Source of the DNA: Dicyema japonicum
Lineage: Eukaryota; Animalia; Dicyemida
DNA: 64,000 bases
Direction: 5' to 3'
Assembly: GCA_011109175.1 (NCBI GenBank)
Contig: RDEW01000025.1
Coordinates: forward strand, 93,990-157,989
Below the pieces are notes generated by a model, which saw only the letters and a list, made by a program, of their open reading frames with translations, was not told the origin of the DNA and made no database searches. The first letter of the stretch is position 1, and every line of letters starts with the position of its first letter. This document shows, piece after piece, positions 2,261 to 62,503 of this stretch. A program made the translations under genes and the position numbers.

Positions 2261-2488
2261 TATTCCCATATCTAAGATTGGAATAGCCATACTCCGAGAA
2301 AACTCGTTCGTCACGCAGCACGCCAGCAGGCTTCCTCAACTGACATTTGTTTTAATTGTTAAAAAATTTTTCTTAAATAAAAAAACAAAAAAAAACTTAA
2401 TTAATTCTGTGTTAAAAATAATTTATTCATTAATTCGTTAATCGATTGATTCAAATTCATTCATTTATTTTAACAGCGAGATTTTCTC

Positions 2489-3448
2489 ATGAGATGTTGT
2501 GATTTTATGCTTAGACACAAATTTAATAAATTAATTCTAATCATGACCCTTGTACTTTAATATTTAATGACTAGTCAATCCTTCTTATTTTTTTATTTCA
2601 CACAAAAAACACCTTCAATGATTATTATCAGGTAAAATACAAGTTTCTGTTTGTCGTTATTTCAGGTTAAATAAACTTATTATTGATAGAACCGAACAAC
2701 GTGCAGAAAAGGGATGCCATAAGGGAAACATGGGGAAACGTAAGGCTATTGGAAAAGATGAATTCTACAATTGTTTTCTTCATCGGACAAAGTAGGACTA
2801 GGAAAATGTCGTTGATAGAGAACGAACAAAAATTGCATAATGACATTGTCATTAGTAAAAACTTTATCGAAGATTACCATAATTTGACCCTAAAAGTGGA
2901 AAATGCATTCACTTGGGCATTGAATGAGTTTAGAGACTTTGATTACTTCATTAAAATCGACGATGACGTCCTTTTGAATGTCGAAAATTTTTTCCTTTTC
3001 CTAACAAAAGCATGTCCAACAAATTTGACAGCCATACTCCATTCATATTTTGTTCAGCCAACCCTATATATATCCAGATAGAAATCCCAAAAGCAAGTGG
3101 TACCCTTTATCTTTATTAAGGTTTATTAGCAAAGATCAATATCCTAATTCAACTTACCCAGATTTTTGTGGTGGACACACGTATTTGATATCTAAGCAGG
3201 CCATCCCTCAAATTTTGAATAACTGTGGAAACCTAATCAAGCTATATTTGGAGGACGTTTATATCACTGGTGAATTTATTAACTAATTTAGTAGGATTAT
3301 GCAGACTTGAAAATAATATCCCACTACTTGTGCACCCTAAATTTATTTTAAACTATCCGATATTTGCAGATTTAAGGATTATGCGACACAACTAAATCAT
3401 TCAGAAGAATCTCTAAAGGATTTATTTGAAAAAATAAAGAACTGTTGA
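2489..3448 (+). CDS. Beta-1,3-galactosyltransferase family (GT31), spliced, type II membrane protein
   Basis: FLFVVIS-EPNNVQKRDAIRETWG, EDYHNLTLK, KIDDD, YPDFCGG, LEDVYITG; GT-AG introns of 21-25 nt; two frame problems (~3010-3050 and ~3345). Confidence 0.85.
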
Positions 3449-6017: not shown

Positions 6018-6235
6018 CCAAGGAATGATCTTCACTTCTTTTTTTCTTTTTCTTGTGTGGGTCCTTTTTGACAATTCAGTTCCACAGTAAGTATCCACTG
6101 ATGACGGCGTCACTCGTCAAACCCTTTTGGCATCGTAGATGCGTGGAACCTTCCACCAGGTGAACAGCAGCGATAATCGAACCCGTAACCTAAGTCACTT
6201 TAGACCGACACCTAACCACTATGCCACCCAGCTAA
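6018..6235 (-). mobile_element. tRNA-derived SINE, copy 1
   Basis: A box TGGCATAGTGG and B box GGTTCGATT on the minus strand; body GGTTCCACGCATCTACGATGC shared with 4 other copies. Confidence 0.8.
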
Positions 6236-6699: not shown

Positions 6700-7200
6700 T
6701 TTTTTTCTTTTATCTGTTATTTAATGACTTGAATCTGTAAGAAAGTAAAGTTAAATATTAGATTTAGGTCAATATGAACTACCTATTCATGTGCAAAATG
6801 AAGAGGTAATGAATCATACCAATTGAGATTGCTAAAGACACCAAAAATGATGAATTTAGTCACTAGTCAAATTTTATCAATAATGTGAATGTCCAATACA
6901 AAAATCAAATTTTCGATACTACCATTAATGCAGCAACTATGAAAGATTTGATTATCTGCAGCTTTCAGTGCGCTTCAAGCTAAGAATCCTAGTTGGGATT
7001 AATGCTTTTTCTTAAATCTCAAGAAAATCTCAATGATTTAATTAAAAATGCATGAAATAGGTCAAAAAATAAATTTCACCAAAAGATAAAATGTTCATTC
7101 ACTTGACTGCTTTATCCGAGACAGTCCGATCACTGTAACGATTTCTCTAAAGCCGAAAATAGAGACCTTCTGTTGTGATCAATCTAATATTAAGCCACGT
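6700..7200 (-). repeat. Segmental duplicate of the surface-protein gene 3' flank plus a remnant TM exon
   Basis: 6700-7100 matches the reverse complement of ~23560-23950; 7150-7200 matches 9015-9080. Confidence 0.7.
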
Positions 7201-8829
7201 TCATCTTTTCTGTGTTAAATAATAATAATTCAAAAATTTTTATATCCCCCAAGTAGGACAGTTATATGCAAGCATAGGTTTCACGATCGAGTTATACAAT
7301 CGGTTTCGGAATCAGATAGATGTCGTTCATTTTCTTATGAAATCTTTTCGTACAATGTTAGGAGATATCGTTGAAAATACTTTTCGTCATAAATATGTTT
7401 TTCCTATCGAGTTACCTACATAAACTGGACAACGCTATAGATGTCCCCTTTTTTCTGAACCTCTTCGGGTTTAAAACAAATCACCTTTTAAATGTCCTGA
7501 ACTTTACGCTGTCGACCTACCATGCCAAAGTTGACCGATCTATGGCAGCTACCGGTATATGCAGCTCTCACTTAATAGCAACTGGTCTCTTACAAGTTAG
7601 TGCGGCAGGGGTAACACATTAACTAGCTACATGTTCAATTTTATATAAAAACTCGAAGATTTAAAAAAATAAAAATCGATAAAAATTCTCTCTATTGACC
7701 TAAAAAATAAATTGACCTTAATTAGGATCATAACCGTTTTGTTTTTCATAGCTTAATCAGTGATTTGAATAAAGTTCTCTGTTCTATATTTCATTTCTGT
7801 ATGGCTCATCATCTACCACTGAACACAGAACACGAATCTGGTTTATTAAGATAGAAAGATCGAGTGAGATGATAAATAGTCCACATTGCTGTCTTTGATT
7901 GACCAAATCTCAAGGACGATGTAGTTATTAGAACCAACCAACAAAGATAAATTACTTTTAATCAATTTTATCCTATAACTTTCCTCCTGTTACTCTAGCT
8001 AACAAGTTTATTTAATTCAGGTCAAGTTAAACTATTTAAGAAACCCAAAACGACAATATCTTACTTATTTTAACTCATATGTGGAAGACATTGAAAGTGT
8101 TCTTCTCTTCTCGTTCTTTTCTTTTTGTGTGTTAGTTCAGAACCACAAAAAACCGTAGATGTGTGAAACCTTCAAATAGTAATTTATATCAAGAAATTAA
8201 AAATTCATTTCAATAATAACTGTTCACACAACAAATATGAAAGATTTGATATTCTGCAACATCCATAACTTTAAAGAGTATAGTCCGCGTAAAATTAAGC
8301 ATCCTAGGTTTAAGTTTATTGCTTATCCTCAATTCTAAAAAAAGCTTAAAAAATTTATTAGATTTAGCTTAAATGAATAAAATAGGTCAAAAAGGCAAAA
8401 TGGCAAAAAATAGAGGGCTATTTGAAAAGACTTTAAAGAGTACACAAGCTGAAGAGAGGCATGGTATATTGATGCCTGTTGATGAAGATGACGGCATGGA
8501 ATGTCAACCTAGGGTAGTCTCTGAATGTAGGAGACTGGTCCACATGTTCTGTCGCAATATTTAATGGATCCAAACACGAATAACCTCAAATCTATTCTGC
8601 GCAATAAGCAAAATCCCAACAACGCACAGTATTTGTTGTTCCTTAAAATTACAGTCTCGGTCAGTTCTTCGGTAAGATAAAAATAAAGAGGTCGACAAAA
8701 AGCCTGTGTCAAACCTGAAAAAGAAGAAGTGTTTGAACAAAAATAAGATCTATTAAAACTTAGAGAAAGAATTGAGTAAGAAAAAGAAATACCATTAACC
8801 CAACAAATCCCAATTCTAACTAAGACTAA

Positions 8830-10006
8830 CTAGTACTCATCGTTGATGAATAGCTTTTTCTGATCCAAATATTCCTAAAATAAATAATTTGATCAAACAT
8901 AGTCGTCCATTCTGACCTTTCTCGATTTTATCTAAAATCTTGACCAAAGTAACCAACCTTTCTAATGATTTTATAAGTAATCATTCCAAGGGATATAACG
9001 AACAAGGATGAGAAAGCCAAAAATAAAGAGACGATTATAGTCTTTCTGTTGTGATCGATCTAATAATGAGTAACATTCATTACCCAAGAATAAAGTCTGA
9101 CGCTGAAAGGAACTAAAACTCACAAAATTTAGTACCATTTTGATGGTGAATTAAATGCTCTCTTGAGAAATGCGTTGGATGCTCGATTTTCTTCAATTTC
9201 TTTTTGAGACAATTTACAAGGTTGTTTATTTTTTCTAAAATAAATTAATATTTTAATAATTTTAGTTGATCTTTTATACCTTCTATGGAAAGATGGTTTT
9301 TTTTATTTAGGTCAGTGTTCTCATTTCGTTCATGATAATTGACATTTTTGAATGAATCCTCGTTTTTTGTATTAGGGGGATACATGATGTTTTTATTTAG
9401 GTCAGTGTTCTCATTTTGTTCATGATGATTAACATTTTTGAATGAATCCTCGTTTTTTGTATTAGGAGGATACATGATGTTTTTATTTAGGTCAGTGTTC
9501 TCATTTTGTTCATGATAATTGACATTTTTGAATGAATCCTCGTTTTTTGTATTAGGAGGATAAACAATATAATCAATTCTATTGTCATCTCTATGGTTTT
9601 CAAAGTAAGCCAAATCATTAGGATGAATTATATAATCTAGAATTTAGATTACCTTCACCTTGTGTTAGCTCATTTTCATAATCTGAGAGTTTGACAAAAC
9701 TTTCCGTAATTTTCACTGGATTCTCGTTTGATTGGTTTTGAGTTGTCGTCTTTGTTGCTTCCAATTCGATTGGTCGTTGTGTAGTTGTTTTTGCTAATAT
9801 TTGTAAATAATTTAGAATTAAGAGAATAAGCAAAATTGAAATAATCTAACCTTTCTTATGAAATCCAAAATTTTTAATTATTCTCACTTAAATAAATTAA
9901 AAATAATACGTAGATCGTTAAATTTAAATTCGCTTTGGATATTTTGAAAGAGTAGTAATAGACTTAGTATTATCATCTAAAAAGTTAATACACCACATCA
10001 AACCAT
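8830..10006 (-). CDS. Novel type-I membrane protein, paralog A (signal peptide, repeat ectodomain, TM, short tail)
   Basis: ATG-only exon 1; MIILSLLLLFQNIQS signal; GT-AG introns keep the frame open; TM IIVSLFLAFSSLFVISLGMITY; ends KKLFINDEY*; same exon structure as B and C. Confidence 0.75.
9299..9562 (-). repeat. Coding tandem repeat, 3 x 90 nt (30 aa MYPPNTKNEDSFKNVNYHEQNENTDLNKNI)
   Basis: ttttatttaggtcagtgttc recurs at 9301, 9391 and 9481. Confidence 0.95.
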
Positions 10007-10179
10007 TGTATCTGTGTCTCATTATAATAATATGCTTTATTTATTAAAAAATGGTTCTCCACAATAAAATTCAATTATTATTTTATTCGTTAAATATTTA
10101 AAATAATAATTAAAATATTATTTTTTTAGAATCGTGATTAGTTATCATATCATAAGTTTACTTGTCAGTCCATCCTTGT

Positions 10180-11125
10180 AGGATAGGGGCAGTGTAACTC
10201 TTTTTTTAAATGTCTCCAGGAGAGGATTAGGCATTTTCCAACTTCTTAAATGGGAGACGTGGACAAGTGATTTGCAATAACATAAAGTCAAAATCCCGTC
10301 TAATACTAAATGGAGTCCCTCAAGAATCCCCACTATCGCCAGCCTTTTTCAATCTCTACATAAACGGCATGCCACAAACCTGTAATAAAAACTGCCTAAT
10401 CCTCTCCTATGCCGGCGATATCATTCTTTCCTCCATGGACAAAACTATTCAATCACCGACTCAGTCCGCTCAAGAAATGCTTGACATGTTCAAACAATTG
10501 CTGTAGAAGCCGATACTCGACGCATCAGCAACAAAGCCCTCTGTCACGCTGTTTACCACTTACAAAAGAAAGCTCTGTGTCTAACCAAAAATCTTTATGA
10601 AGAACCCGGCTATTTCTAATAACAAAACACCGAAAATTCTGGGAGTCACCTTTATCCGACATGTTGAAAAGATAATAACTTCTGCTCTGAGGAAATTGAG
10701 AAATTTAAAAATGCTCTTAAAAACACTTAGAGACCAAATTGGTGTCCTTGCTACGATTTATGAACAGTTTATCCGACCCACGATGACGTATGCAAGTCTT
10801 TCGTGGGCAATGCAGATTTCACAATCCTCCTCATTGAAACTATACGAATTGAGGTGACCGCAATAAGGATAATTGGACCAGAACACAAAATCCAGCCCAT
10901 TGAAAATCTCTTAATCGAATTACAAGGAAACTCTTAGAGAAGGCTAGTTTACCGAGCTGCCCTCTATTCCATGCACTATCGAATTATCTACAATCATACA
11001 GAAATTTTGAGCCGCCATGTCCAATGAGGAGAGCTGTTTAGGATTCTCGACCCCACCGGACTCGTCCTATCCCTTGTCGGTCTGGGATCACTTAGTTAGT
11101 TGAGAACCTTTTATTTTTTTTCTTT
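10180..11125 (+). mobile_element. 5'-truncated Jockey-like LINE
   Basis: GVPQESPLSP, YAGD, PKILGVTF, YEQFIRP; ends GGGATCACTTAG. Confidence 0.8.
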
Positions 11126-12986
11126 GACATGGCTCTTATTACTTACCTTGTATCCCCGTATACCGACGCTAACTCCACTCATCGCACCAATTCATTATTT
11201 CCAAAAACCTCACTTCCACCTTTCAATAAATGCATTTACAGTTAATTCAACCTCTCTAAATTTTGCGAGCTATGTCTATAAATAAAATTTGCAAGGTAGT
11301 TGGTCGAATACACTTATCATACCATCGAATTCCTGGGTCGACTAGGGAATCGAATTTCGACGCCGTTGGTGATCTTCACTTGCACTGAGGACTATTTGAG
11401 CTAATCTCGTTCCCAATCCTGAGAGGAAATACCACACAGTAAGGCAACTGTCGCATGGTCCACAAATTGATTGTTTATCGATTATTTATGAAAAATTAAT
11501 GAACATGTTTGCCTTGGGGGAAAAGGGGGAATTACTTTTGGACGTAATTTTGAAATAAAATGAAACACTTGAGACTGTGAAATGAAACACTTGACTTTTG
11601 GAAGTCATGGGAACAAAATGAAAATTTACTAGGTTCCCACGTGCGCCACACATGAGACTGTGAGCATGTTACTAATTTACATTCCATGTTAACATATTAA
11701 AAAAACATTAGTAACAGAGACTGTGACTACTGCAGTAGATGGTAATTATCGGGGGTTGTAAAAACTATCTCTGATTGTGGAGGTCGCAGAGTCATGTGCA
11801 ATAGCATTCTCGATTTCATAGATGACTCATCTACTAATACTTTTCACTGCTCCATGGTTTCAAGGGAAATTGAAAAAACCTTCGAGAGCTGAGTATTTCA
11901 AGTTTTCTTTGTTTGACAGAGTCGGCATTAGATCAATCTTAGTAAAGATAATTAATTTGGTGAAAATGGGAATTCTACTCAAATTAAAAATCTTTTTCAT
12001 GTGATGATGTTTTAAAGAACTTTCATATTTTGGATGAAATATGGGAACTTGAAGATTACCTGACTGAAATTTTGGGCAGCTAACTGTTGAATGTCTTAAA
12101 AAATTGAGTCAGATTGCCAAAAGTTAAATTGGTAATATCTGATAAAAACTCCAATTTTTTGTTAGTTTGAGATTAAAAATTGGTTTTCAGTGTGTCAGTG
12201 TCGAATGGTCACGAAACCAGAGATTTAGTACCAAAATATTTACTACATAGCTTGTATGTGTAAGTTACCAAACGAAGTGTTTAGTATGTTCACATGCTTA
12301 TACTAGAGTGGAGTGTAAACCCGTGGAGTTACCTGAAAAAGCGTGTGAATTGTGGTTCCAAAAACATCAACAATAGAAGTTGTCAAAAAACTGAGCAATA
12401 CCAGAAAATCGAGAGTACATAAAAAATCTTTACGACAATTTAAATTCACATTCAAAAATTAACATTTAAAATCTGAAATGAACAGCGAAACTTAAGTTGG
12501 AATTTACAGATCAATTTATCATAATTTGAAGCTTCGTTTTTTACCAAAATGTACTGTAGAAATGTTCACTGCCTCAGACACGGATGTGACCAATCCTAAC
12601 AAGTTCTCTAGGCAGATTAAATGTTAATCTCATCGTGATTTGGATTAGTATTTTACTTATCCAACCCGGACATGATGCTATACTTTATGGAAATTTCAAG
12701 GTACCTTGGAAAGGAATTTGTGCAGAAGGATGTTTGGGAAGGTAGGCCATCCTTTAGGAATTTTCATTATCGTTTGAGTAGAACTGATTCAAAAACCAAA
12801 TACTCGGAATTAGGATATATGTTTGGTGGCTTTCTAGATTGTATAATTTAACTTCATTGCGGATCACAGATCACACAGAAATATATAAAATTATATAATT
12901 ATTTATTAACAAATAATAATTAATTTAAATAACATCGATTTATTCATTGTTGACATTTATAAACTAACTAGCACTTTGGAAGGGCA

Positions 12987-14831
12987 ATGACAATAGTAGA
13001 CTCTTTGAGGCAGTCTATCTCACTCACAGAACGTCTATGTTCAGTTATAAATCAGTCCTACTCCAACCGACTGCTCATAAAGTTCAAATATTATCGAATT
13101 GGGAGTCCCTACCCACGACTATTTACATTTAACCCAAGTGCTTCTTCCCCTATTGGGGAGACCGTAAACAAAATAAAATTTAAACTCGACATTTTCTGCA
13201 AAAATGATATTTTGAAGAACGAAATTTATGTCAAAGAGCATGATGAGAAGATTATAAATAATGACATCTCCACATTGAGGGTTTGCGTCTAATTTATGCT
13301 TCAGGCCTTTCAAACCGGGAACCTTCTGAGTATTAACCAAATAAATTACAAAATTATCGAAAATTTGCCTGAAATTTCCGGATTTAGTCTCCCAGGTGTA
13401 CTTCACTGCAATTTCTTTATCTACCCAATAATAGAGCTACTCAACTGCTCAGAGTACCAAGTGCAGTGGTTTGTAAGCAAATCCCCACGTAAGGACAGTT
13501 TTGGCCTTTCCGCTTCAACCATAACCAAAAAATTGTTTGAATCTCTGGAAAATGACCAAAAAGGTGTAAAGCTGCCGGAGATCTTTGTTGGCCATGAAGT
13601 GAGAGCTGTCGTATTTCCGAAAAATGACTCCCAAATAGGCTTCGAAGCGATCTGTGGTGGAATCTTGAGGGAACCACCGACATTGCCGATCAGAAACTTG
13701 AAGATTAACTCTGTCAACAACGAAGACTCAAAGTATATGATTATCAATATCCTGGATGTTTAGGGTTGTGAGCTACAACGTCCTGGCTGGATCCTGTACT
13801 GTGGACTCCTACGCAAAGAACGAGCTCTATAAGTACTGCAATCCGGAGTTCCTCTGTCCAAAGTACAGGAAAGTGCTGCTTAACGAAGAAATCATCGGTA
13901 ATTCCGTTAATTATAATCATTTTGTGTATTTTTACTTCCAGGTTACAGTCCTGACATTGTTTGTCTGCAGGAAGACGATTTGGACATTGGACTGAACTCC
14001 CTGAATTCTATTTATCCCCAACGGATGTATAGAAGAACGTCTGACAAGAATCTGACGACTATTTTCCGTCAGGACAAATTCACGTGACATTTTTGCTTAA
14101 CAAAATAGTCTGATTGCTGAATTTTTTGTTGATTTGGCAGCTATATGCTTCAAGAGTCCTCATTACTCCCAAATCAGAAGTATGATGGACTCTTCTTCCC
14201 CCGAAATATCCGATCTGTTTTTCTCTCGCAAAAATTACCTCCAATGCACCGTTTTGGGTTTTCGTGGAAGCACGGAAGCCGAGTCTACCACCCTCTGCAT
14301 TGGGAACACACACCTTTATAGTCACCCCCACGCCGATGCGATCAGATTGCTGCAAGTAACCCTCTGTCTAAGTGAGATGACGATGATTTTGAACGAATTA
14401 AGCTCGAAGGTTGTTTGTTGTTTTATTTTTGGGTTATCATCCAATTCCGATGTTGTGTGGGGATTTTAACAGTTTACCTACCTCAGCTGTGTACCGATTT
14501 GCTACGGGAGACCTCATAAGGTTTGATGATGAGACTTGGAATGTGAGTGGAGTTGGGGGATTTAAGAACATAAGAGTCGATAAAATGGCTGGTATGGATC
14601 TCAGTCATTATTTGTCGTTATCCTCGGCCTTTGGGACTCCAAAATATACGCATTTTATTGAAAGGTTCTCGGGATGCCTCGATTATATCTTTTACGATAA
14701 GAAGAAACTCAATGTCCATTCATTTTCTTGAGTTTCCGGACGAAAAAGTTATAACCGAGCAGGTTGCTCTCCCAAATGAGTGGATTTCGTCTGACCATCT
14801 GGCATTGGTTGTTGATTTCTCGGTAAAGTGA
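12987..14831 (+). CDS. PDE12: 2',5'-phosphodiesterase 12 (EEP/CCR4-family deadenylase), spliced
   Basis: VVSYNVLA...LYKYC...YRKVLL..EI.GYSPDIVCLQE, NTHLYSHP, CGDFNS, FSGCLDYIFY, ALPNEWISSDHLALVVD. Confidence 0.9.
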
Positions 14832-14929
14832 ATTTTACTGATTTTTAATTATTTAATTGTAAATTTATTTTAATCATGTTTTGTTCCTTGGATCAGTGTC
14901 TCTCAACCTTTTTTTCATTTCGCCCCTCC

Positions 14930-15450
14930 CCCATAATAACTATATTCACCTGCTCTCTTGCCGTCTTAGCAGTGGCAGGATCCCGACAGGGTTTTGAAGC
15001 GCTGTTTGAGGCGGTTGGATTCTTGTCATTTATGGAATCAGTGGGTATGGATCGTGGAGATGTAAAACGCCCGGACGTGATAACTGTCTTCCCCTTCTCT
15101 TAGAGGAAATGCTTGATTTCGGATGGGGCCTGCAGCGACATTTTTTAAGTCGAGACTTTCAGGCTGCGCGTTGAAAGCTGGGGAGGCTGCTCATACAATC
15201 GAGAATTTCAAAATAAGAAAATATGACAGCCTATCAATAAGATTCTATGTACAGCCCTTAGTCGTTGTGGCGAACTTAGTCTTCGGACCAAGAAAATCTC
15301 TTTTCTAAGATCGCTCGGGTCTATGATATCGAAAGCGTGCAGCGAACGTCGGGAAACCGAGAGGTGTTCCAAAAGATTTCTCTGACAATTGTCACCACTC
15401 AATTATCTAGCTTGATTACTTTGATTTTTTGTAACGTAATAAATTATTCT
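14930..15450 (+). mobile_element. CRE-like retrotransposon 3' fragment (REL)
   Basis: DRGDVKRPDVITVFPF, ENFKIRKY; contains stops and frameshifts. Confidence 0.8.
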
Positions 15451-16278
15451 TAATTAGTAATTTCTATTAAAAGACACTTGACCTTGGTGAAGGTTTACCA
15501 GATGCTCTATATTTGGGATTCTTTTAGTAAAAGCTACTCTAATGTCTCCTCTTATGCAGATGTAAAAAATTATTACGCTCCTTCCGTATCATAAGTTTAT
15601 GTTCTCCATGTTCGATGAATTATTATTTTACTTCTTACTTTTTAAATAAAGTGAGTTCTGCCAAAGCTGAGGTTTAATAACGTAAACATTACTATTTCTT
15701 GGCACCAGGGCTGCTGAAATGCACAATATTTGCCGATCACGGATATTACATCATCATTTGCAGAGAAGATATTATGCGTTTTTTATTTGTTAAAATAAAA
15801 TAACCAGCATTGACGACAATTTCTTCATTTGCAGATTTGTAGGCATTTATCAATGAAGTTTTTTATTCTTTCGTCATTGTTTTGCCTTGTGTTTTCAATT
15901 CACTATTTTTTCCTAGTGATTTAGGATGCTTGAATTACGCGTGTTTTAACAAACGAAGTGGAATGAGCGCTTCGTCACGAAGCTCAACACCACATGGCAA
16001 TAGATCATTAGATTTTAAATAAAACCAAAGAAATATAGTTCTCTTTATTTATTTTATTTTTTAAGAGGTGATTTCTAGTACTACTTAAAACTATAACATT
16101 TATATTTTATTTCATTTAAAATTATTCGCTGTTATTCGCGGAAACGCTTACTCCGTGATGTCAGCAGCCGCTCTCCCCCATAGTTAATAAATAATATTTT
16201 ATTGTTAATAAATTTTTGTTTTATAAAAAAAAAAAAATTTTAAAATTATTAGCGTGATTTCTAATACTTCGTGATGAG

Positions 16279-17200
16279 TAGGGCGATTTTTGTCAATAAA
16301 GTCAAAAATTTATATGCTCTTTAAAAATGTTTAAAATTATTAAAATGTCGTTTTTAGTCAAAAATATTATATTAATCAAAGTTATAATGTCAAAAAAGGT
16401 CAAAATTTAATTTTTTAGGTCAATAAAGTCAAAATTTTTATTGATTTGTATTGATTTTTTAATTTTTCGAGTTTTTAAATAAAAATAAATACTAGCGTGG
16501 GATCAACTATCATCATTCATTATGTTGCCGCGTTCAATCGATAATGACATTGAAAAGAATTATTCTGTTTTGTGCTTTAACTAACTAACATTTGTAACTG
16601 AAAAAAAGCAATTTTTATTAAATCACGTAGATCGTCTAAGAAACAAATCAAATTATCAGGTTCATTATTACTATTTTATATGTGTCAATATTATACAACC
16701 CATTGATTTTCTCTTTTCATCTGCCGACATATAGGACGATAATTACACTGAGGCTTTTGTCAAATCCGATATTCCTTGCATAAGTTAAACAGTAAAAGCT
16801 TACGAGGACTTGTTGAGAATATTGACATAATCTTCCTTCTACTACGCTTGCCGAAAAAGTGTAGAAAACTTATGCCAAGAGCAGCTTTACAGATTTTATT
16901 TTCATTCATTATAGATCTGGAAATTTTTTTGATTGATGAAACTGATATCCGAGGACAGAAATATCACTTAATGGAAAAATTTCTGATCCCAAGAAAATAT
17001 TTTTAATATTTTGTCGTCATGTCCTCTGCGGCTAACTCTTCGATTACCTGTCAGATAATTGAGAATTCTAAGGAATTTTGCGAGACGCGGTAGAACACAT
17101 CAGATATTTCATTTCGGGGACGATTTATGTGGAATCAGGAAGTACTGGAATTGAGATTATCTGTCAATCGCTATTGCCGATCACAGGAAATTCTCGTCTA
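16279..17200 (+). mobile_element. hAT (CGGBP-like) transposon relic with putative terminus TAGGGCGATTTTT and GTCAAAA subterminal repeats
   Basis: EAFVKSDIP/LHKLN and IDETD motifs; the same terminal sequence occurs at 57570. Confidence 0.55.
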
Positions 17201-17461
17201 TAAACAACTCCTTTTCTGGTATTAACTTTTTTTTCTTATTAAAAAGTACTAGTTGTGATTGATTACAACTCAAAATATACAATGATCAAACTCACAAAAA
17301 GTAAAACCTATTTGGAAATGACAAAATTATGTCAAACATAATTTATTATGTTGGCACGCTTTAATTCTTCAAACCGATGACGGCAAAGCATTTTGAATGC
17401 TCACATGGAAAAATTGTACACAAAGTTCTCTATAAAGCATTTAATAGGCAGGCAAAGGGCT

Positions 17462-17661
17462 CCAAGGCCAAGTTTTTCTTGTGTGTGGGTCCTTTCTAGA
17501 CAATCCAGTTCGCAGTGGGTATCCACCGATGACGGGGGCACTTGTCAAACCCTTTTAGCATCGTAGATGCGTGGCACCTTCCACCAGGTGAACAGCAGCG
17601 AGATTCGAACCCGTAACCTTAGTCACTTTAGCCCGACACCTAACCACCATGCAACCCGGCT
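17462..17661 (-). mobile_element. tRNA-derived SINE, copy 2
   Basis: Highly similar to 6018-6235; B box GGTTCGAATC. Confidence 0.8.
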
Positions 17662-18497
17662 TAGTTAGTTTATCTAACGGAAATTTAAGGCCGTATCAGT
17701 CTTTTAAAAGGACATCGTGTTTGAATAGAATAATTTTTTCCTATAAAATTTATTTATAGACTGCTGGGAGCACGCCATAATAACGACCGAAAAACTCGGT
17801 TTCCCTAGGCAAGATCAGGCTATTTTCTACAAAGTATGGTGCTAATAACGGTGGGCTATTAAATGAGAAGGTGTCGATAGAATTACAAAATAATAATTTA
17901 ATTGATAAAAATAACTTAAAAAGCTTCATAATGTCATCTACGGCGCATAGGTAAACCAACACGTCGACCTAGTCGTCGACAAAATGGATAAAATACAGTA
18001 ACTACTCACTATGATCGGAGACTTTGTTCAAGTGTATTCAAGACCGCAATATTTTTAGGGGCGATCAACAATCCATGTCTTCATTAGATCATTTAGCCAA
18101 TCAGTATGATCCATGATCTACCAAGACTATGTGTGGAGGCATATCACGGTAGTGAGAAATACTCATCTCCTACTATGATTAAGTGTGATATTCGCCACAT
18201 AAAAAGTTGCTGAGTCATAAGGTGCAACATGTAGTAAAGAAAACCAGGATCATATCAAGGTGGACAGTGTTGTCCGAACCACGAAGTAACGACGTGAGAG
18301 GGAATCGCAACACAAAGAACCACAAAAAGTTATCTAAGATAGTTAAGAGAAGGTATGAATCTTCAACATAGTAACTTTTTTGGGTTTCTTAAATAAAGTT
18401 TTTTTTAATTATTTAATAAATAAAATAATAATTAAATTTTACTGTGGAGAACCATATTTTAATAAATAAAGCATATTATTATAATGAGATACAGATA

Positions 18498-19321
18498 ATG
18501 GTTTAATGTGTTGAATTAATTTTTTAGATAATAACACTAAGTCTATTACTACTCTTTCAAAATATCCAATGCAATTTCAAATCCGATATTCGAAGTATTA
18601 TTTTTCAATTTATTTAAGGTAATAGAGCGTATGTGTATAGATCAGATTTGATAGGTAAGAGTTGATAGTTTAAATTAACTTATTTTCTTAATTCGAATGT
18701 ATTTATAAACTATTAGAAAACAACGGAACAATGAGTAATATTGAAAAAAATATTTACAGTAAACTAAAATATGAAGATGACTTAATAAGTTGAGGTTCAG
18801 TCTAATTTCTAGATTCAATATTCCTTCCTGAAAATGTTATGCCTGAGGATCATTATTACGTTCCAAATATAGAAAGTATAAAAAATTAACTACAATTATC
18901 AAAATATTAATTTATTGTAGATAAACTCGTATTAATTGAATATTTGCTCAAAGTGAAATTAAAGAAAATCCGTGATCAGGATCTAAGATATTTCAATAGA
19001 GAGGATTCAAATCACCATCAGAACGGTATTAAATTTTGTGACTTTTAGCCCCTTTAAGAGTCAGATTTTATTCTTGGGTATGAGTGTTACTCATTATTAG
19101 ATTGATCACAACAGAAAGACTATAATTGTCTTGTTATCCTTGACTTTATCATCCATGTTAGTTATACTCCTGGTGCTGTTTTATCATAAAATCATTAAAA
19201 GGGTTGGTTACTTTGGTAAAGATTTTAGATAAAATCGAGAAAGGTCAGGATGGGAGACAAAGTTTTATCAAATTACTTATTTTAGGAACATTTGACTCAG
19301 AAAAATAATGAGTTTAGTTAG
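18498..19321 (+). CDS. Novel type-I membrane protein, paralog B
   Basis: ATG|intron|ATAATAACACTAAGTCTATTACTACTC signal; spliced frame stays open through RVRFYSW|IDHNRKTIIVLLSLTLSSMLVILLVLFY to NNEFS*. Confidence 0.75.
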
Positions 19322-19809
19322 TCTTAGTTAGAATTGGGATTATTAATTGGGTTAATGGAAATTTTTTCTTTTTTTGAATTTAGTTTAAATATATCTTATC
19401 TATGTTTTGCTCAATCACATATTCTTAAAATTTTTCTCTAGTCAAGAAGATTCGATCTAATGACTTTTCTAAAAGTATCAGTGTCACTATTTAATTGACT
19501 CATTTCTTAAATCTCTCATTTACATACACATCATTCTCATTAGCCTTTCAACGAAATTATTCACAAGAATGACGATCGATAAAACATTTTGTGGGAACAT
19601 TCAATTTTTCACCCACTATCTCTTAATGTGAGAAAACGGATGCCTGCAGGGAAGTAACAGCCAAAAGCGACGCTCCCTTAGATCAGTCATTATATGAACA
19701 TTATTTTTTCTGCTGAGATTTATTTTGTGACCTATTTCATGCATTAAATTATTATTGAAAGACAGTATCATTGAAATGAACTATTAATTTCTTGGTATGA
19801 ATGACTATT

Positions 19810-19960
19810 TGAAGGTTCCACGTATCTACGATCCTTTTTGGTTGACGAATGACGTCATCATATTTCACCATTACGGAACTAGATTGTCTTCTGGAACTCA
19901 CACATAAAAAGAAAAGATCGACAAGTCAAAAACATTTTCAATCTCTTGGATTTGCCTTGT
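19810..19960 (+). mobile_element. 5'-truncated SINE, copy 3
   Basis: gaaggttccacgtatctacgat...ggaactagattgtc...aagtcaaaaacattttcaatctcttgg. Confidence 0.7.
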
Positions 19961-20349
19961 AGTAGTAACATTACTGTTCTTATTTCTTACTGTTCTTATG
20001 CCAGGTTTAATTGACATCACTGTCAAGGCGATAGTTCTTTTTGGCTTTGAAATGACAATCAAAGACAGCATTGTGGACTATGTATCATTCTATCTTTGTA
20101 TCTTATAAATCAGACACCAATAGATGAACATGTTCGAATTATTATCATTTAACCCAGAAAAGGGAACAAGAATTTGTTAAACCATCTAAACAGGTGCGAG
20201 TGGTTTTTGAAGTTCTCCTCCCTATTACCACAGTTTTCTGTATTCAAGACACTCCTTTTTCTGCACAATTTGTAGAGGCGTGGATTTTTTCAGAACTTTT
20301 TAACGTGGTTCTAGTGACGTCAGGTAGTTCACCTTATGTTATGGCGTTC

Positions 20350-21070
20350 AGCGTCAAAAGCATGAAAAGACCCGTTTTCTTTCCCCATCGATCCGATTTG
20401 TTTGAAACCATTCTTACCCGTCAGATTTGGTTGTATCGGCCTAACATCTGGTTCCCTTCTGGAACAAGATTCCCTCCGGAATTGGATATCAATCCGTTTC
20501 AGAATTTACCGATGCCAGTCTCATCCATGCCGTTGTGGATCTATTGTGAATTGCAAAGGACTTCATCCGCTCTCTTGCTGTCTCAGCAGAGGCCGGTTCT
20601 CTAGGCATGCTGCCATCAACGGGGTTGTGAAGCGCTTTCTTGAGGCGGCTGGATTCACGCCATCTTCAGAAAAGGTGAGATTGGATCGTGGATATGGAAA
20701 GCGCCCAGACGGAGTAACTTTCTTTCCCTTCTCTTTGGGGGAATTCTTGATTTGGGATGGGGCGTGTATCAACACTTTCCTAGTTGAGACATGCTGGTTC
20801 CTTGTTGAAAGCTGGGGAGGCTGTCGGACTTTTGAGAATTTCAAGATAAAAAAATACGGCAGCCTCTCCACTAGATTCCATATACAACCCATTGTCGTCG
20901 ATACGAGTGAAGTCTTTGGCACTAAGACAGTCTCTTTTCTAAGATCGCGTGATTCAATGATATCGAAAGTCAGTCATGGTTGTTAAAGAAGGATTTCTCT
21001 GGCAGTTGTCAGGGGAAACAGCCATTCCATCCTATTAGCTAGATTATTTTAAATGTCTTGTTACGTAATA
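20350..21070 (+). mobile_element. CRE-like retrotransposon 3' part (zinc knuckle + REL)
   Basis: CRCG...HPLSC...RHAAIN...GKRPDG...IWDGAC. Confidence 0.85.
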
Positions 21071-22193
21071 AATTCTTTTTGATCTCTTAGATTATAAAAA
21101 ATGAGGAACAAATGGTTGAAGTCACATCTAATATTCAGATAAGATAATTTATGTAAAAACGTTCGTTCTAAACAAAACTACAAAAACAAGGACACTAAGG
21201 AGGAGAAAATAGCTACTTACGAATTACTAGGATAGTTGGAGTATGACTATTAAATAGGTTAATTAGAATTTTCTCTCACTAAGTTCTTTCTCTTGTGACC
21301 TATCAATTCTTCGTTTATTTATCCACTTATCGATATTTCCTAGTCATAAAAATTCGTTCTCACTAACTTTTCTAAAAAAGACCATTATAGACTGGCTATT
21401 AAATTGACATACTAATTCTCTCTTATTTTTATTTGTAACGTAAAATCATTCAAGAAAGGTACAATCAACTAATGATTTATAAAAATCATGATTCCAGGAA
21501 CATTACGAGCAGTTGACGGGTTTTCAATCTCAAGGACGACTTTTAAGTGTGGTGAGTGAATAACTTCAAGGGTAGGGCTGTGGACTACGTATTAGCTTAC
21601 TCGATCTTGGTATCTTAATTAAATCTAACTTATGCGTTCTGTCTAGGTTGAGGAGGTGGAGTCCCTCTCTTGTTATGTCTAGAATGCACTACGGAAATGA
21701 GAACTTTTCCTTTATGACATTCAATGTCATGGTCTTATGCACCACTATAAGATCTGACCTTTTTATGCCCTAAAGAATTATGGAAAATCGGTTCCGTGCT
21801 TCAGAGAGACATAAACGAACATCCAGATTGATGAGGATTATGGTGAATACAGATTTCTCTTACTACAAACAGGGTGATGACAGTATTCATTCCTTTTCTG
21901 CTCCGAAAGTCTACAAATACGCAAATACTGGAGGAGAGTTCGGAGATGTCATATGGGCAGATGGCTAAATTAGACAATGCGCGCTCGGAGCTGTTTCAGT
22001 TACAAAAATCGAACCTAAGGTGGAAGCTGGAAAATAAGGCAAGCGAGAAGGTTGCTAAAAATTAAATAGTAACTTTTTGGTTTGTTAAATAAAGTTTTTA
22101 TTTAAATTAATATATAAAATAATAATGAAATTTTACTGTGGAAAACCATATTTTAATAAATAAAGCATATTATTATAATGAGACACAGATACT

Positions 22194-23145
22194 ATGGTTT
22201 GATGTGGTGAATTAACTTTTTAGATGATAATACTAAGTCTATTACTACTCTTTCAAAATATCCAAAGCGAATTAAAAATCGAAGATCTACGTATTAATTT
22301 AATTTATTTAAGTTGAGATATCGTCTAAGTTTGGATTAATCCGAAAGGTTAGATTACTTCAATTTAACTTATTTTCTTAATTCTAATATAATTATAAACT
22401 ATTAGAAGACAACCAAAAACTAGAGACCACTGATGAAGATTCTGTCAATCATTTAAATTACAACAATGAATTAATGAGTTGAGGTTCAATCTAAATTCTA
22501 GATTCAATAATCGTTCCTGAAGATATTATTCCTCATTTAAACCATGAGAGCAAGAATAGTGAAAATCATTTTTATCCTCACGAAAAACATAGAATTGATT
22601 ATATCATGTATCCCCCTAATCACAAAATCGAGGGTTCATTCAAAAATCTTAATAATCATGAACGAAATGAGAACATTGACCTAAATAAAAATAACCATCT
22701 TCCCATAGAAGGTATAAAAGATTAACTAAAATTATTAAAATATTGATTTATTGTAGAAAAAATAAACAACCTTGTGAAATGTCTCAAAAAGAAATTGAAG
22801 AACGCATTCTCAGGAGAGCATTCAATTCACCATCATAATGGTACTAAATTTTGTGAGTTTTAGTTCCTTTCACCGTCAGACTTTATTCTTGGGTAATGAA
22901 TGTTACTTATTATTAGATCGATCACAACAGAAAAACTATAATCGTCTCTTTATTTTTGGCTTTCTCATCCTTGTTCGTTATATCCTTTGGAATGATTACT
23001 TATAAAATCATTAGAAAGGTTGGTTACTTTGGTAAAGATTTTAGATAAAATCGAGAAAGGTCAGAATGACGACTATGTTTGATCAAATTATTTATTTTAG
23101 GAATATTTGGATCAGAAAAAGCTATTCATCAACGATGAGTGCTAG
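22194..23145 (+). CDS. Novel type-I membrane protein, paralog C (two apparent 1-nt frameshifts: pseudogene or consensus error)
   Basis: Near-identical to A in signal, TM and tail; has one copy of A's 30-aa repeat unit; indels in exon 3 (~22340) and at ~23067. Confidence 0.65.
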
Positions 23146-24289
23146 TTAGTCTTACTTAGAATTGGGATTTATTGGGTTAATGGAAATTCTTTTTCTTCAG
23201 TTTATATTTAAATATATCTTATCTATGGATTCCTTAATCATATAATCTTAAAATATTTTTCTCAAAAAGATTCGATCTACTAACTTTTCAAAAGTATCAG
23301 TATCAACTATTGGTTGACTCATTTCTTACTGATTCTGTCTTATTTTCATCCTCATCCTTCTCAAATAGCCTGCAACAAAATTATTTATAAGAATGACGAT
23401 CGCTAATACATTTCGTGCGAACATCTTATTATTTACCCACTGTCTCTAAAAATTAGACAACTGATGCTTGCAGGGAGGTAGCAACCAAAAGCGACGTTCC
23501 CTTAGATCAGGGAGGTAGCAACCAAATGCGACGTTCCTTAGACGTTCCCTTAGATATGAACATTATCTTTTCTGCTGAAATTTATTTGTTTGACCTATTT
23601 CTTGCATTTTTAATTACATTATTGATCTTTCATGATATTCAAGAAAAAACATTAGAGTAAAACCTAGGATGCTCAGTTTGAAGCGCATGAAAGCTCCGAA
23701 TGATCATATCTTTCATAGTTGTTGCATTAATAGTTGCCATTGAAAATTGGATTATTGTGTTGGACATTCACATTATTGATGAGATTTGACTAGTAACTAA
23801 AATCCGTCATTTTTTTGGGTTTTTATTAATCTTAATTCGTATGATTCATTACTTCTTCAATTCGCACATGAATAAGTAGTTCATGTCGACCTAAATTTAT
23901 TATTTATCATAATTTTCGTGCAGAATTAAGTCATTAAATAACAGAGAAAAAGTTATCTAATATGGAACAGTTCGACAATGATATCCATAAACAGGTGGCT
24001 AGGTATGTATGGGATTGACAAAAGTGTCTAATGTCTAGCTTTTATTCTGTCAATAGGAGTCGATCGGTTTGCCTAGTAGCTGATGGCAATTGGCTAAGTA
24101 CTGGAGATTTACAGAGTGTTGTGGACTATGCATCAGCGAAATCAACTCCGATGTCTTTATTAAATCCGAATTATTAGTTGCTATAAAGTCTATGTTCGGG
24201 CAGCATGCGTTTTATCATGATTTTAGTGGGAGAAGTAATAAAAATAATAATTGAATTTGATATAAATTTTTTCATATCCTGTATTTTCC

Positions 24290-62284: not shown

Positions 62285-62503
62285 CCAAGGAATGCTCTTC
62301 ACTCCTTTTTTCTTTTTGTTGTGTGTATGTCCTTTATAGACTATCCCGTTCCGACGTGATATTTTCCTTGATGACGGTGTCACTCGTCAAACCAAAACAT
62401 CGTAGATGCGTGGTACCTTCAACTGAATATACATCAGCGAGATTCGAACCAGAAATCATCAGGCCTTTTGCCAGGCACTTATGACACTGCACCATCCCGG
62501 CTG
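62285..62503 (-). mobile_element. tRNA-derived SINE, copy 5
   Basis: GGTTCGAATCTCGCTG B box and shared body. Confidence 0.8.

Follow-up and report, generated by a model that had tools for sequence, protein, structure and literature searches.

Three genes of Dicyema japonicum, A, B and C, raise the question why the introns and promoters of paralogs should be more alike than their exons. They are a clean test case for whether such a pattern results from constraint on non-coding DNA or from acceleration of the coding parts; exons and introns alternate every 25–100 nt in this family. The genes lie in a 64,000-nt stretch of DNA (the window). They were originally predicted to encode diversifying host-facing antigens or adhesins with variable ectodomains and a homogenised membrane anchor. 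Dicyemids are among the simplest animals; they are attached to octopus kidney tissue and feed through the membranes of their outer cells (PMC6736024). The surface molecules of dicyemids are almost uncharted, and the family provides concrete candidates, namely orphan predicted membrane proteins which appear to be kept open, co-regulated and free to change. In our view A, B and C probably belong to a taxon-restricted, co-regulated family of type I membrane proteins under weak sequence constraint.

Gene models and extent of the family

Spliced models and similarity blocks of 100–260 nt at 80–97% identity (repeat finder), far above chance, confirm that A, B and C are paralogs located where they had been predicted. 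A further copy has left a relic in the window.

8830–10006, minus strand: gene A, 10 coding exons, 301 aa, frame fully open by spliced model and translation (exons 10006–10004, 9976–9910, 9886–9851, 9793–9659, 9636–9280, 9234–9136, 9112–9084, 9059–8958, 8931–8899, 8874–8830).
18498–19321, plus strand: gene B, 10 coding exons, 181 aa, frame fully open by spliced model and translation (exons 18498–18500, 18528–18594, 18619–18654, 18717–18788, 18813–18875, 18921–19025, 19049–19077, 19101–19202, 19229–19261, 19286–19321).
22194–23145, plus strand: gene C, 10-exon plan as in A and B, frame open with two read-supported bases counted (exons 22194–22196, 22224–22290, 22313–22347, 22406–22477, 22502–22711, 22757–22840, 22864–22892, 22917–23018, 23045–23076, 23101–23145).
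7148–7204, minus strand: relic fragment of another copy, containing the last part of intron 7 and the first part of the membrane exon (blastn search of the window with the family sequences).

The three genes share an ATG-only first coding exon, which is followed by a signal-peptide exon. Their introns are GT..AG, occupy the same positions and phases and have lengths of 22–62 nt (22–57 nt in A); GT..AG is kept at all nine introns in six copies. Together with the W|I junction motif, the helix and the tail described below, the predicted common features are thus present in A, B and C. Exon 2 of gene B begins with ATA, where the aligned copies have a second ATG. Therefore, the upstream ATG and intron 1 are needed in this gene. 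Exons 3–6 are all phase 1-1 and comprise 36, 72–228, 63–357 and 57–105 nt, respectively.

In the assembly, single bases are missing from gene C after 22337 in exon 3 and after 23067 in exon 9. An extra C and an extra G, respectively, are found at these positions in every read-derived contig from four of four read sets. The frameshift in exon 3 of gene C is an assembly error: the exon has 35 nt and a broken frame as assembled, and 36 nt in frame with the read-supported base. Hence, the exon 3 peptide given previously for C was slightly off at its end. Exon 3 had also been said to differ strongly between the genes. It is indeed variable, but it is recognisably homologous in five of six full-length copies, contains a stop codon in none of the six and has a length of 36 nt in five of them as assembled (in all six with the additional base in C). 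A last intron of 42 nt, leaving a 15-nt exon 9, had to be abandoned. Copies D, E and J do not have its GT donor, and synonymous changes between copies occur in the 18 nt that this model removes. The last intron of the family is a conserved sequence of 24–25 nt (GTTTGA...TAG), and exon 9 has 33 nt. Genes of this kind can be mis-modelled from this assembly because of single-base errors, introns of 24 nt and a first coding exon of only 3 nt.

The size of the family was determined by a whole-genome DNA search and a search with a family-specific 15-nt word (assembly of 67.5 Mb, 377 scaffolds). Seven further copies were found outside A, B and C. Four scaffolds carry the roughly nine open loci of the family; in addition, there are one pseudogene truncated at its 5' end (G) and several fragments, including some on another scaffold. 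Copy E contains an in-frame stop, and copies D and F each have one single-base frame problem as assembled. Copy J is minimal; since it retains only ~25 ectodomain residues, at least one open copy can dispense with its ectodomain. The family is an orphan: Pfam matches were absent for every exon, a profile of exon 5 had 0 matches among 1.84 billion representative proteins, and a protein atlas search returned scores at noise level only. This agrees with the original prediction, in which no known family was recognised.

Architecture of the predicted proteins

The predicted products of about 100–300 aa consist, in this order, of a cleavable signal peptide, an ectodomain, one membrane helix and a basic tail, where signal peptide and helix were called by hydropathy and by reading of the sequence. 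Gene A has one strong hydrophobic window at residues ~248–270. Its Kyte-Doolittle score in a 19-residue window exceeds 1.6 only at residues 247–256, with a maximum of 2.4; the N-terminal h-region of 9 residues is below the length that scores as a helix. The membrane helix is followed by a basic K/R-rich stop-transfer stretch (K-S-R-K). By hydropathy, an N-terminal signal, a helix of ~20 residues and positive charges behind it correspond to a type I membrane architecture.

The ectodomain is rich in Asn, Lys, Glu, Thr and His. It is composed of degenerate Y-P-x-x-N/E repeats plus a T-T-T-x-N-Q patch; in gene A it contains one Cys and no cysteine framework. An AlphaFold model of exon 5 has a pLDDT of 46 and no secondary structure, and the ectodomain is predicted to be disordered. 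Close to the membrane a W / I-x-H-N motif is found, and the junction W|I-D-H-N-R-K-T is common to A, B and C. The tail of ~30 residues carries D-Q-K-K-L-[L/I/F] in six of nine copies (L-L in D and E, L-I in F, L-F in A, C and J; absent in B, H and I). This short, putative motif agrees with the acidic dileucine sorting consensus or comes close to it. The tail is supported by the conserved last intron and tail frame, the homologous stop and synonymous changes within D-Q-K-K-L.

Presumably, the proteins pass through the secretory pathway as they are made and reside in the plasma membrane or endocytic membranes of the outer cells of the parasite, where they may serve as a coat or sorting component. 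Selection would act on architecture, composition and trafficking signals rather than on the exact sequence. The conserved non-coding DNA may provide the copies with a common regulation and may secure the splicing of very short exons.

Sequence exchange, conserved non-coding DNA and drifting exons

Five elements in the window are relevant for the divergence of the three genes.

9300–9569, minus strand: three tandem in-frame 90-nt (30-residue) repeats in exon 5 of gene A, 93–100% identity (repeat family D3 and translation).
22603–23200, plus strand: A-like gene-conversion tract in C, partner in A at 9388–8778 (informative sites).
~22184–22365: second, shorter A-like tract in C (informative sites).
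10007–10106, minus strand: conserved 100 nt upstream of gene A, counterparts at 18400–18497 (B) and 22095–22193 (C).
8792–8829, minus strand: conserved ~40 nt directly behind the gene A stop, with TTGGGTTAATGG at the end, counterparts at 19322–19358 (B) and 23146–23183 (C) (alignments).

The number of 90-nt units in exon 5 is three in A, one in C and none in B. From the last of these repeats to ~50 nt past the stop A and C are 96–98% identical, introns included, as had been noted for the transmembrane and tail half. Inside the main tract of C, 79 informative sites are A-like and 8 B-like, in contrast to 9 and 58 downstream and 1 and 19 upstream (Fisher p = 2e-27 for tract versus flanks). Outside the two tracts C is B-like, and so is the flanking DNA on either side. 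Judged by these sites, two A-type tracts are embedded in a B-type locus, and the paralogs exchange sequence; the suspected gene conversion was thus detected. The near-identity of A and C is consequently due to a conversion tract and not to an anchor homogenised throughout the family. Homogenisation was borne out for A and C only, whereas the anchor is 73–86% identical in the other pairs and as divergent as the rest. The family diversifies by three routes: repeats are gained and lost in frame, whole phase-1 exons are lost, and gene conversion takes place between ectopic copies.

The conserved upstream stretch consists of a TATA-like A/T-rich part and the 15-nt word TAATGWGAYACAGAT directly before the ATG. 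This word has nine matches in the 67.5-Mb genome, eight of which are at family members. The 100 nt upstream are 86–95% identical in all pairs of six copies, and this level is the same whatever the age of the pair. The introns are 77–92% identical, interiors included, with length differences between copies of 1, 2 or 5 nt. Conserved secondary structure was looked for in the ~40 nt past the stop, and none was found. In all 15 pairs the exons are less conserved than the introns and than the 100 nt upstream, as stated originally. Where flanking DNA can be aligned, its identity is 0.85–0.86 for B–C and 0.81–0.90 for D–E. In these pairs exon divergence is close to that of the flanks or a little higher, and introns and promoter have diverged about half as fast as the flanks; the excess of intron over flank conservation has p = 6e-4 (D–E) and p = 0.02 (B–C). 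Therefore, the contrast between exons and introns largely stems from constrained non-coding DNA. Actin paralogs of the same genome served as a control. Their upstream identity is 0.39–0.61, and intron and third-position identities are 0.44–0.50 versus 0.41–0.49 in distant pairs and 0.83 versus 0.73 in the closest pair. Actin introns track third codon positions, and the conserved-intron signature is absent from this control. On the reading favoured here, the signal peptide, the 100-nt promoter, the introns and the ~40 nt past the stop are under purifying selection. If this holds true, the information in some ultra-short introns would not be limited to their splice sites.

In the signal peptide, identity is 0.88–1.0 at codon positions 1 and 2 and 0.69–0.94 at position 3. 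At least 17 length-change events separate the copies in exons 3–6 and the last exon. Of these, 15 are exact multiples of 3 and two are off by a single base, which is the same kind of difference as the read-shown assembly error in C. Since 4.8% of point changes in A would make a stop, 4–8 stops per lineage are expected without selection. No new stops are present in A, B, C, D, F and J, and because exon length changes also stay in frame, the family genes are kept open. The dN/dS ratios are 0.22–0.88 in the ectodomain exons (Nei-Gojobori, 11 pairs), a range that rests on low-complexity sequence which is hard to align, and 0.36–1.0 in the membrane block, where dS rests on ~32 synonymous sites. In distant pairs the membrane block is ~65% identical at each of the three codon positions, and differences per codon position are spread evenly (196/198/235). 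The mature protein drifts at close to the local neutral rate (dN/dS 0.2–1.0), although a mixture of positive and purifying selection could equally result in such a rate. Diversifying selection, as originally predicted, is not supported by ratios below 1 or at most 1.0; exon divergence is nonetheless above that of the introns, as the same prediction had it.

A set of host-facing variant antigens or adhesins, with exposed parts under diversifying selection and an anchor kept uniform by homogenisation, is unlikely. It would agree with exons being the more divergent part in 15 of 15 pairs, with the divergence of B–C ectodomain exons (23.7% versus 15.1% in the intergenic flank, p = 0.008) and with a membrane-block dN about equal to flank divergence. 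Recurrent repeat gain and loss, the conversion patchwork and exons 3–6, which can be skipped without loss of frame, also fit. However, dN/dS is not above 1 in any pair or region, the even spread over codon positions is that of weak constraint, the anchor is homogenised nowhere but in the A–C tract, D–E exons are no more divergent than their flanks, and copy J stays open. What is retained of the original antigen reading is an orphan multi-copy membrane family with exchange between its members; its selection is not borne out and the repertoire amounts to about nine loci. To our knowledge the cephalopod host is without antibody-type immunity, which weakens the analogy to antigenic variation.

It is rather improbable that a gene-sized cassette (~110 nt upstream to ~130 nt past exon 9) was recently copied or repeatedly homogenised. 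Introns and gene ends would then show the true neutral divergence, and exons including synonymous sites would be accelerated by coding-directed mutation or selection, as proposed for some toxin genes. Homology between subfamilies does end at the unit edges, and short exchanged patches are present in C. In 14 of 15 pairs dS (0.23–1.1) exceeds intron divergence (0.03–0.28), as in D–F (0.27 versus 0.24 and 0.20); for A–C, however, a dS of 0.032 is above introns 6–8 (0.028) only and not above all introns (0.072). Toxin gene families have been described in which introns and signal peptides are conserved while the mature regions diverge (PMC2474615). On the other hand, the alignable flanks match the exons and are about twice as divergent as the introns, which indicates constrained introns rather than accelerated exons. 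The flat upstream identity at any pair age is that of a functional element, and conversion tracts would have to skip exons of 29–102 nt yet homogenise introns of 23–26 nt. It is likewise doubtful that an exon-aimed process (diversifying selection plus short-tract conversion, or targeted mutation) drives exons including synonymous sites apart while introns, promoter and 3' end are held constant. Were divergence exon-driven, a very simple animal parasite would have a small diversifying set of host-facing coat proteins.

It is highly improbable that the loci are non-functional and represent either ORFs in decay or a repeated element with its own signals as the conserved blocks: the copies do sit among transposon fragments, with pseudogene G, fragments on another scaffold, the relic in the window and the stop in E, and the runs containing the locus have the appearance of DNA data (intergenic stretches evenly covered, no intron-sized joints), but most copies keep an open frame over nine to ten exons, exon lengths, unlike intron lengths, change in frame, the signal peptide is conserved at the protein level, helix hydrophobicity is retained despite sequence turnover, all nine introns keep GT..AG in six copies, and read depth over the genes is single-copy-like, unlike that of the adjoining transposon.

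Comparison with known systems

The weakly constrained membrane family that we favour resembles several known systems in part. As outlined in the cited reports, schistosome micro-exon genes (MEGs) are parasite-specific orphans with a signal peptide, frame-keeping exons, fast evolution and a presumed role at the host interface (10.1101/2023.06.21.545858, PMC4350168). The Dicyema family is likewise an orphan and fast-evolving, with a conserved signal peptide and phase 1-1 exons 3–6 in multiples of 3. In contrast to MEGs, its exons are mostly not micro (29–357 nt versus ~3–81 nt for MEG micro-exons), its introns have 22–62 nt instead of kilobases, and its products are predicted to be membrane-anchored with a cytoplasmic tail rather than secreted. 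Sequence similarity to MEGs was found neither with Pfam per exon nor with the exon-5 profile against 1.84 billion proteins.

Synonymous sites of PLA2 and conopeptide genes have diverged further than the introns. Toxin families of this type combine a conserved signal peptide, introns and gene ends with a divergent mature region and exchange segments between paralogs (PMC2474615). The Dicyema genes share this layout and the exchange with snake three-finger toxins, PLA2 and cone-snail peptides. Those toxins, however, have dN/dS ≥1 and a fixed cysteine scaffold and are secreted, whereas the Dicyema proteins have a dN/dS of 0.22–1.0, no cysteine framework and a predicted membrane anchor, and the flank comparison points to constrained introns.

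Members of the var, VSG and VSP families exchange sequence by gene conversion, and they combine variable exposed domains with flanking or regulatory DNA that is conserved. The repertoires of these families range from tens to thousands, their members are expressed one at a time, and diversification is driven by the adaptive immunity of the host. The Dicyema genes are also a multigene family with conserved flanking and regulatory DNA and gene conversion, but with about nine loci, an invertebrate host and an ectodomain dN/dS of 0.22–0.88.

LIMP-II and CD3-gamma are single-pass membrane proteins sorted by [DE]xxxL[LI] signals. Here the likeness is at the motif level, without homology; A, C and J have L-F, and B, H and I are without the motif. 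In common with these sorted proteins, the Dicyema family has a predicted type I topology and a short basic tail, with D-Q-K-K-L-L in D and E and D-Q-K-K-L-I in F as candidate signals.

Gene models of A, B and C

Three paralogous genes with ten coding exons each were modelled in the window, an AT-rich stretch of eukaryotic DNA whose introns are very short:

A: 8830-10006, minus strand
B: 18498-19321, plus strand
C: 22194-23145, plus strand

A repeat finder returned shared blocks of 100-260 nt with 80-97% identity among the three genes. A and C align from about 110 nt 5' of the ATG to about 50-60 nt beyond the stop codon, and the alignment of B with C extends about 450 nt further. The models were built by projecting intron positions through the alignment; an unconstrained spliced-ORF search was dropped as a model source because it yielded many spurious models. 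The ATG-only first exon and the common intron plan of the original prediction are borne out by the projected models, in which every intron is GT..AG and 22-62 nt long.

Coding exons of A, B and C
Exon 1: ATG only, followed by a 27-nt intron
Exon 2: 67 nt, signal peptide
Exon 3: 36 nt (C after read correction)
Exons 4-6: three ectodomain exons of variable length
Exon 7: 29 nt, ends in W
Exon 8: 102 nt; I-D-H-N-R-K-T motif, membrane helix and first basic residues
Exon 9: 33 nt (C after read correction)
Exon 10 (last): 36-48 nt across the family

The frame is uninterrupted in A (301 aa) and B (181 aa), but broken in C as assembled by a 35-nt exon 3. Reads from four runs (one study, one sample, none recorded as RNA) were placed on 18300-23300, where intergenic coverage was even and intron-sized joints were absent, and were used for assembly correction. 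In all four runs the read-derived contigs are one base longer than the assembly at each of 21338, 21379-21380, 22045-22046, 22337 and 23067. The bases added after 22337 and after 23067 bring exon 3 of C back to 36 nt and its exon 9 to 33 nt. Hence, the assembly contains single-base deletion errors here, seemingly about one per kb, which bears on the judgement of other copies. Before a pseudogene is called elsewhere in this genome, an apparent frameshift should be compared with reads.

Further copies and coding evidence

The whole assembly (67,542,437 bases in 377 pieces; published as 67.5 Mb in 377 scaffolds with a scaffold N50 of 1,000.2 kb and a mean intron of 38 bp, PMC6736024) was searched at the DNA level with unit C as query. 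Seven loci were found beyond A-C, of which D, E and F are full-length.

Family loci beyond A, B and C
D, scaffold C35: open but for one single-base frame problem
E, scaffold C35: in-frame stop and a frame problem
F, scaffold C334: open but for one single-base frame problem
G, scaffold C290: 5' half and splice sites lost
H and I, scaffold C374 (L013, L014): open, without exon 3
J, scaffold C35: open, without exons 3-5, only about 98 residues
Scaffold C135: two small family fragments
Window 7148-7204: 45-nt family relic

Exon 9 of H and I has a common one-base deletion relative to the rest of the family, and in the last exon of I a 7-nt loss and a 5-nt gain bring the frame back to the family's D-E-C stop. 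Intron 6 of H appears to have a GC donor. A 15-nt word just 5' of the ATG has nine matches in the genome, eight at family members and the ninth by chance. Scaffolds C235 (5'-word match) and C212 (3'-word match) were considered as sites of extra members and rejected as chance matches, with no gene at either.

Exon 2 opens with ATA or GTG in B and J, so these copies can start only from the upstream ATG with splicing; in H the upstream ATG is replaced by ACG and the exon-2 ATG is retained. The predicted ATG-only first coding exon is supported by this family comparison.

Length differences among the copies in exons 3-6 and the last exon amount to at least 17 events. Fifteen of the 17 are exact multiples of three; the remaining two miss this by a single base, as does the read-proven error in C. 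Intron lengths differ by 1, 2 or 5 nt. The stop-creating share of point changes in A is 4.8%. At the observed divergence 4-8 new stops are expected per lineage, and none was seen in six copies. In the signal peptide, codon positions 1 and 2 are conserved and position 3 is variable. The helix turns over in sequence while its hydrophobicity is kept.

The 42-nt last intron originally proposed does not stand, since the GT required directly after K-S-R-K is missing in D, E and J; the 18 nt that it would excise show synonymous differences among copies (AGA/AGG, TTG/TTA, GTC/GTT). A last intron of 24-25 nt, starting with GTTTGA (GTTTTA in B) and ending in (T/A)TAG, is found in A-F and J. After it the frame is open up to a stop at the homologous position, the last-exon lengths (45, 36, 45, 48, 48, 48 and 42 nt) are each divisible by three, and the D-Q-K-K-L codons change synonymously between copies. 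A tail ending at the TGA within GTTTGA (C-terminal D-x-V) was rejected because the downstream frame, the homologous stop and the in-frame length changes are all conserved. An RNA structure check of the conserved 3' end gave no consensus pairs.

A galactosyltransferase gene lies at 2683-3286 (+), about 5.5 kb from A (Pfam Galactosyl_T, E = 8e-22 and 1.5e-9 for two of its exons). An 86% identical 900-nt copy of the stretch that holds it (2393-3290) directly adjoins pseudogene G, thus a segment with both genes was duplicated. A reverse-transcriptase fragment (10267-10503, +; RVT_1, E = 2e-8) lies directly upstream of A, and an endonuclease/exonuclease/phosphatase-like ORF (14411-14728, +) between A and B scores 23.3 bits, below the Pfam cut-off of 24.5. 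An 84-nt repeat at 6131-6214, 17559-17642 and 62398-62481 (74-100% identity) has a tRNA-like GGTTCGAATC box on the opposite strand and may be a tRNA-derived short interspersed element; neither ARAGORN nor Rfam found a tRNA in the window. A high-copy element at 20471-21138, also at 1336-1665 and 15006-15392, has a contig depth 10-40x that of neighbouring DNA, with loose contig ends piling up at 20989-21024. Diverged copies of it occur near each family gene, and its ORF has no Pfam match.

Divergence of exons, introns and flanks

Rates were compared in the 15 pairs formed by the six full-length copies A-F.

Pairwise identity among full-length copies
100 nt upstream: 86-95% (15 pairs)
All introns: 80-93% (15 pairs)
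Intron interiors, 6 nt trimmed per end: 77-92% (15 pairs)
Ectodomain exons: 74-84%, with hundreds of gap columns (15 pairs)
Membrane block (exons around the membrane helix): 73-86% (all pairs but A-C)
Membrane block, gaps removed, codon positions 1/2/3: about 0.67/0.71/0.63 (distant pairs)

Introns and upstream DNA are therefore more alike than exons in 15 pairs, as originally observed for A, B and C, but this is not so in five actin paralogs of the same genome that served as control. Their introns are 25-28 nt long at the same positions; the actin genes L044 (scaffold C318) and L045 (C345), for example, have three, after coding nt 126, 342 and 576. Between older actin paralogs the intron positions are kept and the intron sequences are not: intron identity is 0.44-0.50 vs 0.41-0.49 at third positions, so that one tracks the other. 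The closest actin pair has 0.83 vs 0.73, and actin upstream identity is 0.39-0.61. Since actin introns track third positions, conservation of tiny introns is not general in this genome, and actin introns are a usable baseline for its intron turnover.

The contrast between introns and exons had been read as diversifying selection on host-facing antigens or adhesins. The key support for this reading, dN/dS above 1, is lacking in both the membrane block (0.36-1.0) and the ectodomain (0.22-0.88), and the repertoire is small. We thus regard an antigen or adhesin family as unlikely. Membrane-block dS (0.23-1.1, from small synonymous-site counts) exceeds intron divergence (0.03-0.28) in 14 of the 15 pairs, the exception being D-F; for A-C it does so only with the intron 6-8 figure.

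Only two pairs have alignable flanks, B-C (identity 0.85-0.86) and D-E (0.81-0.90). Introns are conserved above the flanks in both (D-E, p = 6e-4; B-C, p = 0.02), as is the promoter in B-C (p = 0.007); the ectodomain exons of B-C fall somewhat below the flank in conservation (p = 0.008), and membrane-block dN roughly matches flank divergence. These comparisons indicate that the sequence coding for the mature protein changes at close to the local neutral rate, with the ectodomain perhaps slightly faster, and introns and promoter at about half the neutral rate or less. A gene-sized cassette, young or homogenised, with truly accelerated exons would suit the observation that homology ends at the unit edges between subfamilies, but both flank comparisons are contrary to it and make it unlikely.

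A and C are indeed nearly identical over the half that encodes membrane helix and tail. Where two of the three genes share a base against the third, C resembles B upstream (19 vs 1 A-like) and downstream (58 vs 9), but A in 22603-23200 (79 vs 8 B-like; p = 2e-27), with a second A-like stretch at about 22184-22365. These sites identify gene conversion between two copies in inverted orientation, 13 kb apart, as the source of the near-identity. Hence, the proposed homogenised anchor does not extend to the family, since in pairs other than A-C the anchor has diverged as much as the rest of the gene. Within 22873-23107, in the 3' half of C, contigs and assembly disagree at eight sites, of which seven are exonic, and some contig variants equal the A or B base at that site. 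These variants may represent contigs of a paralog placed at the wrong locus, a second haplotype (heterozygosity was published as 1.24%) or further conversion.

Predicted protein and interpretation

The N-terminus has a hydrophobic core of nine residues followed by Q-N-I-Q-S. Protein A has a sole strong 19-residue hydrophobic window at about 248-270 (Kyte-Doolittle 2.4) with basic residues after it. Signal peptide, single helix and basic tail predict a type I membrane topology. The ectodomain of A consists of 16% Asn, 10.5% Lys, 9% Glu, 7% Thr and 6% His, with one Cys, one N-x-S/T site and three tandem repeats of 30 residues. An AlphaFold model of exon 5 from a shallow four-sequence alignment has a pLDDT of 46 and no secondary structure, which fits a disordered segment. 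Conserved islands are T-T-T-x-N-Q (exon 4), Y-P-x-x-N/E units and N-E-N-x-D-L-N-K (exon 5), and W/I-x-H-N at the membrane.

No known family had been recognised originally. In agreement, Pfam gave nothing above noise on seven exon translations and a protein atlas search scored no better than shuffled sequence. An exon-5 profile had no match among 1.84 billion representative proteins, which is weak evidence of absence as that library may not hold this organism. No relatives were found in libraries that may not cover dicyemids.

We consider it probable that A, B and C belong to a taxon-restricted family of co-regulated small type I membrane proteins under weak sequence constraint. Selection would then keep the architecture and composition together with the signal peptide and a few motifs, while the rest drifts; variation would come from in-frame gain or loss of repeats, deletion of complete phase-1 exons and ectopic conversion. 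In the tail, D-Q-K-K-L is followed by L (D, E), I (F) or F (A, C, J), and this putative motif would fit or nearly fit the acidic dileucine sorting consensus. From the topology, the sorting-like tail and the animal's way of feeding we infer a surface or endocytic location; dicyemids feed by endocytosis through their outer cells (PMC6736024).
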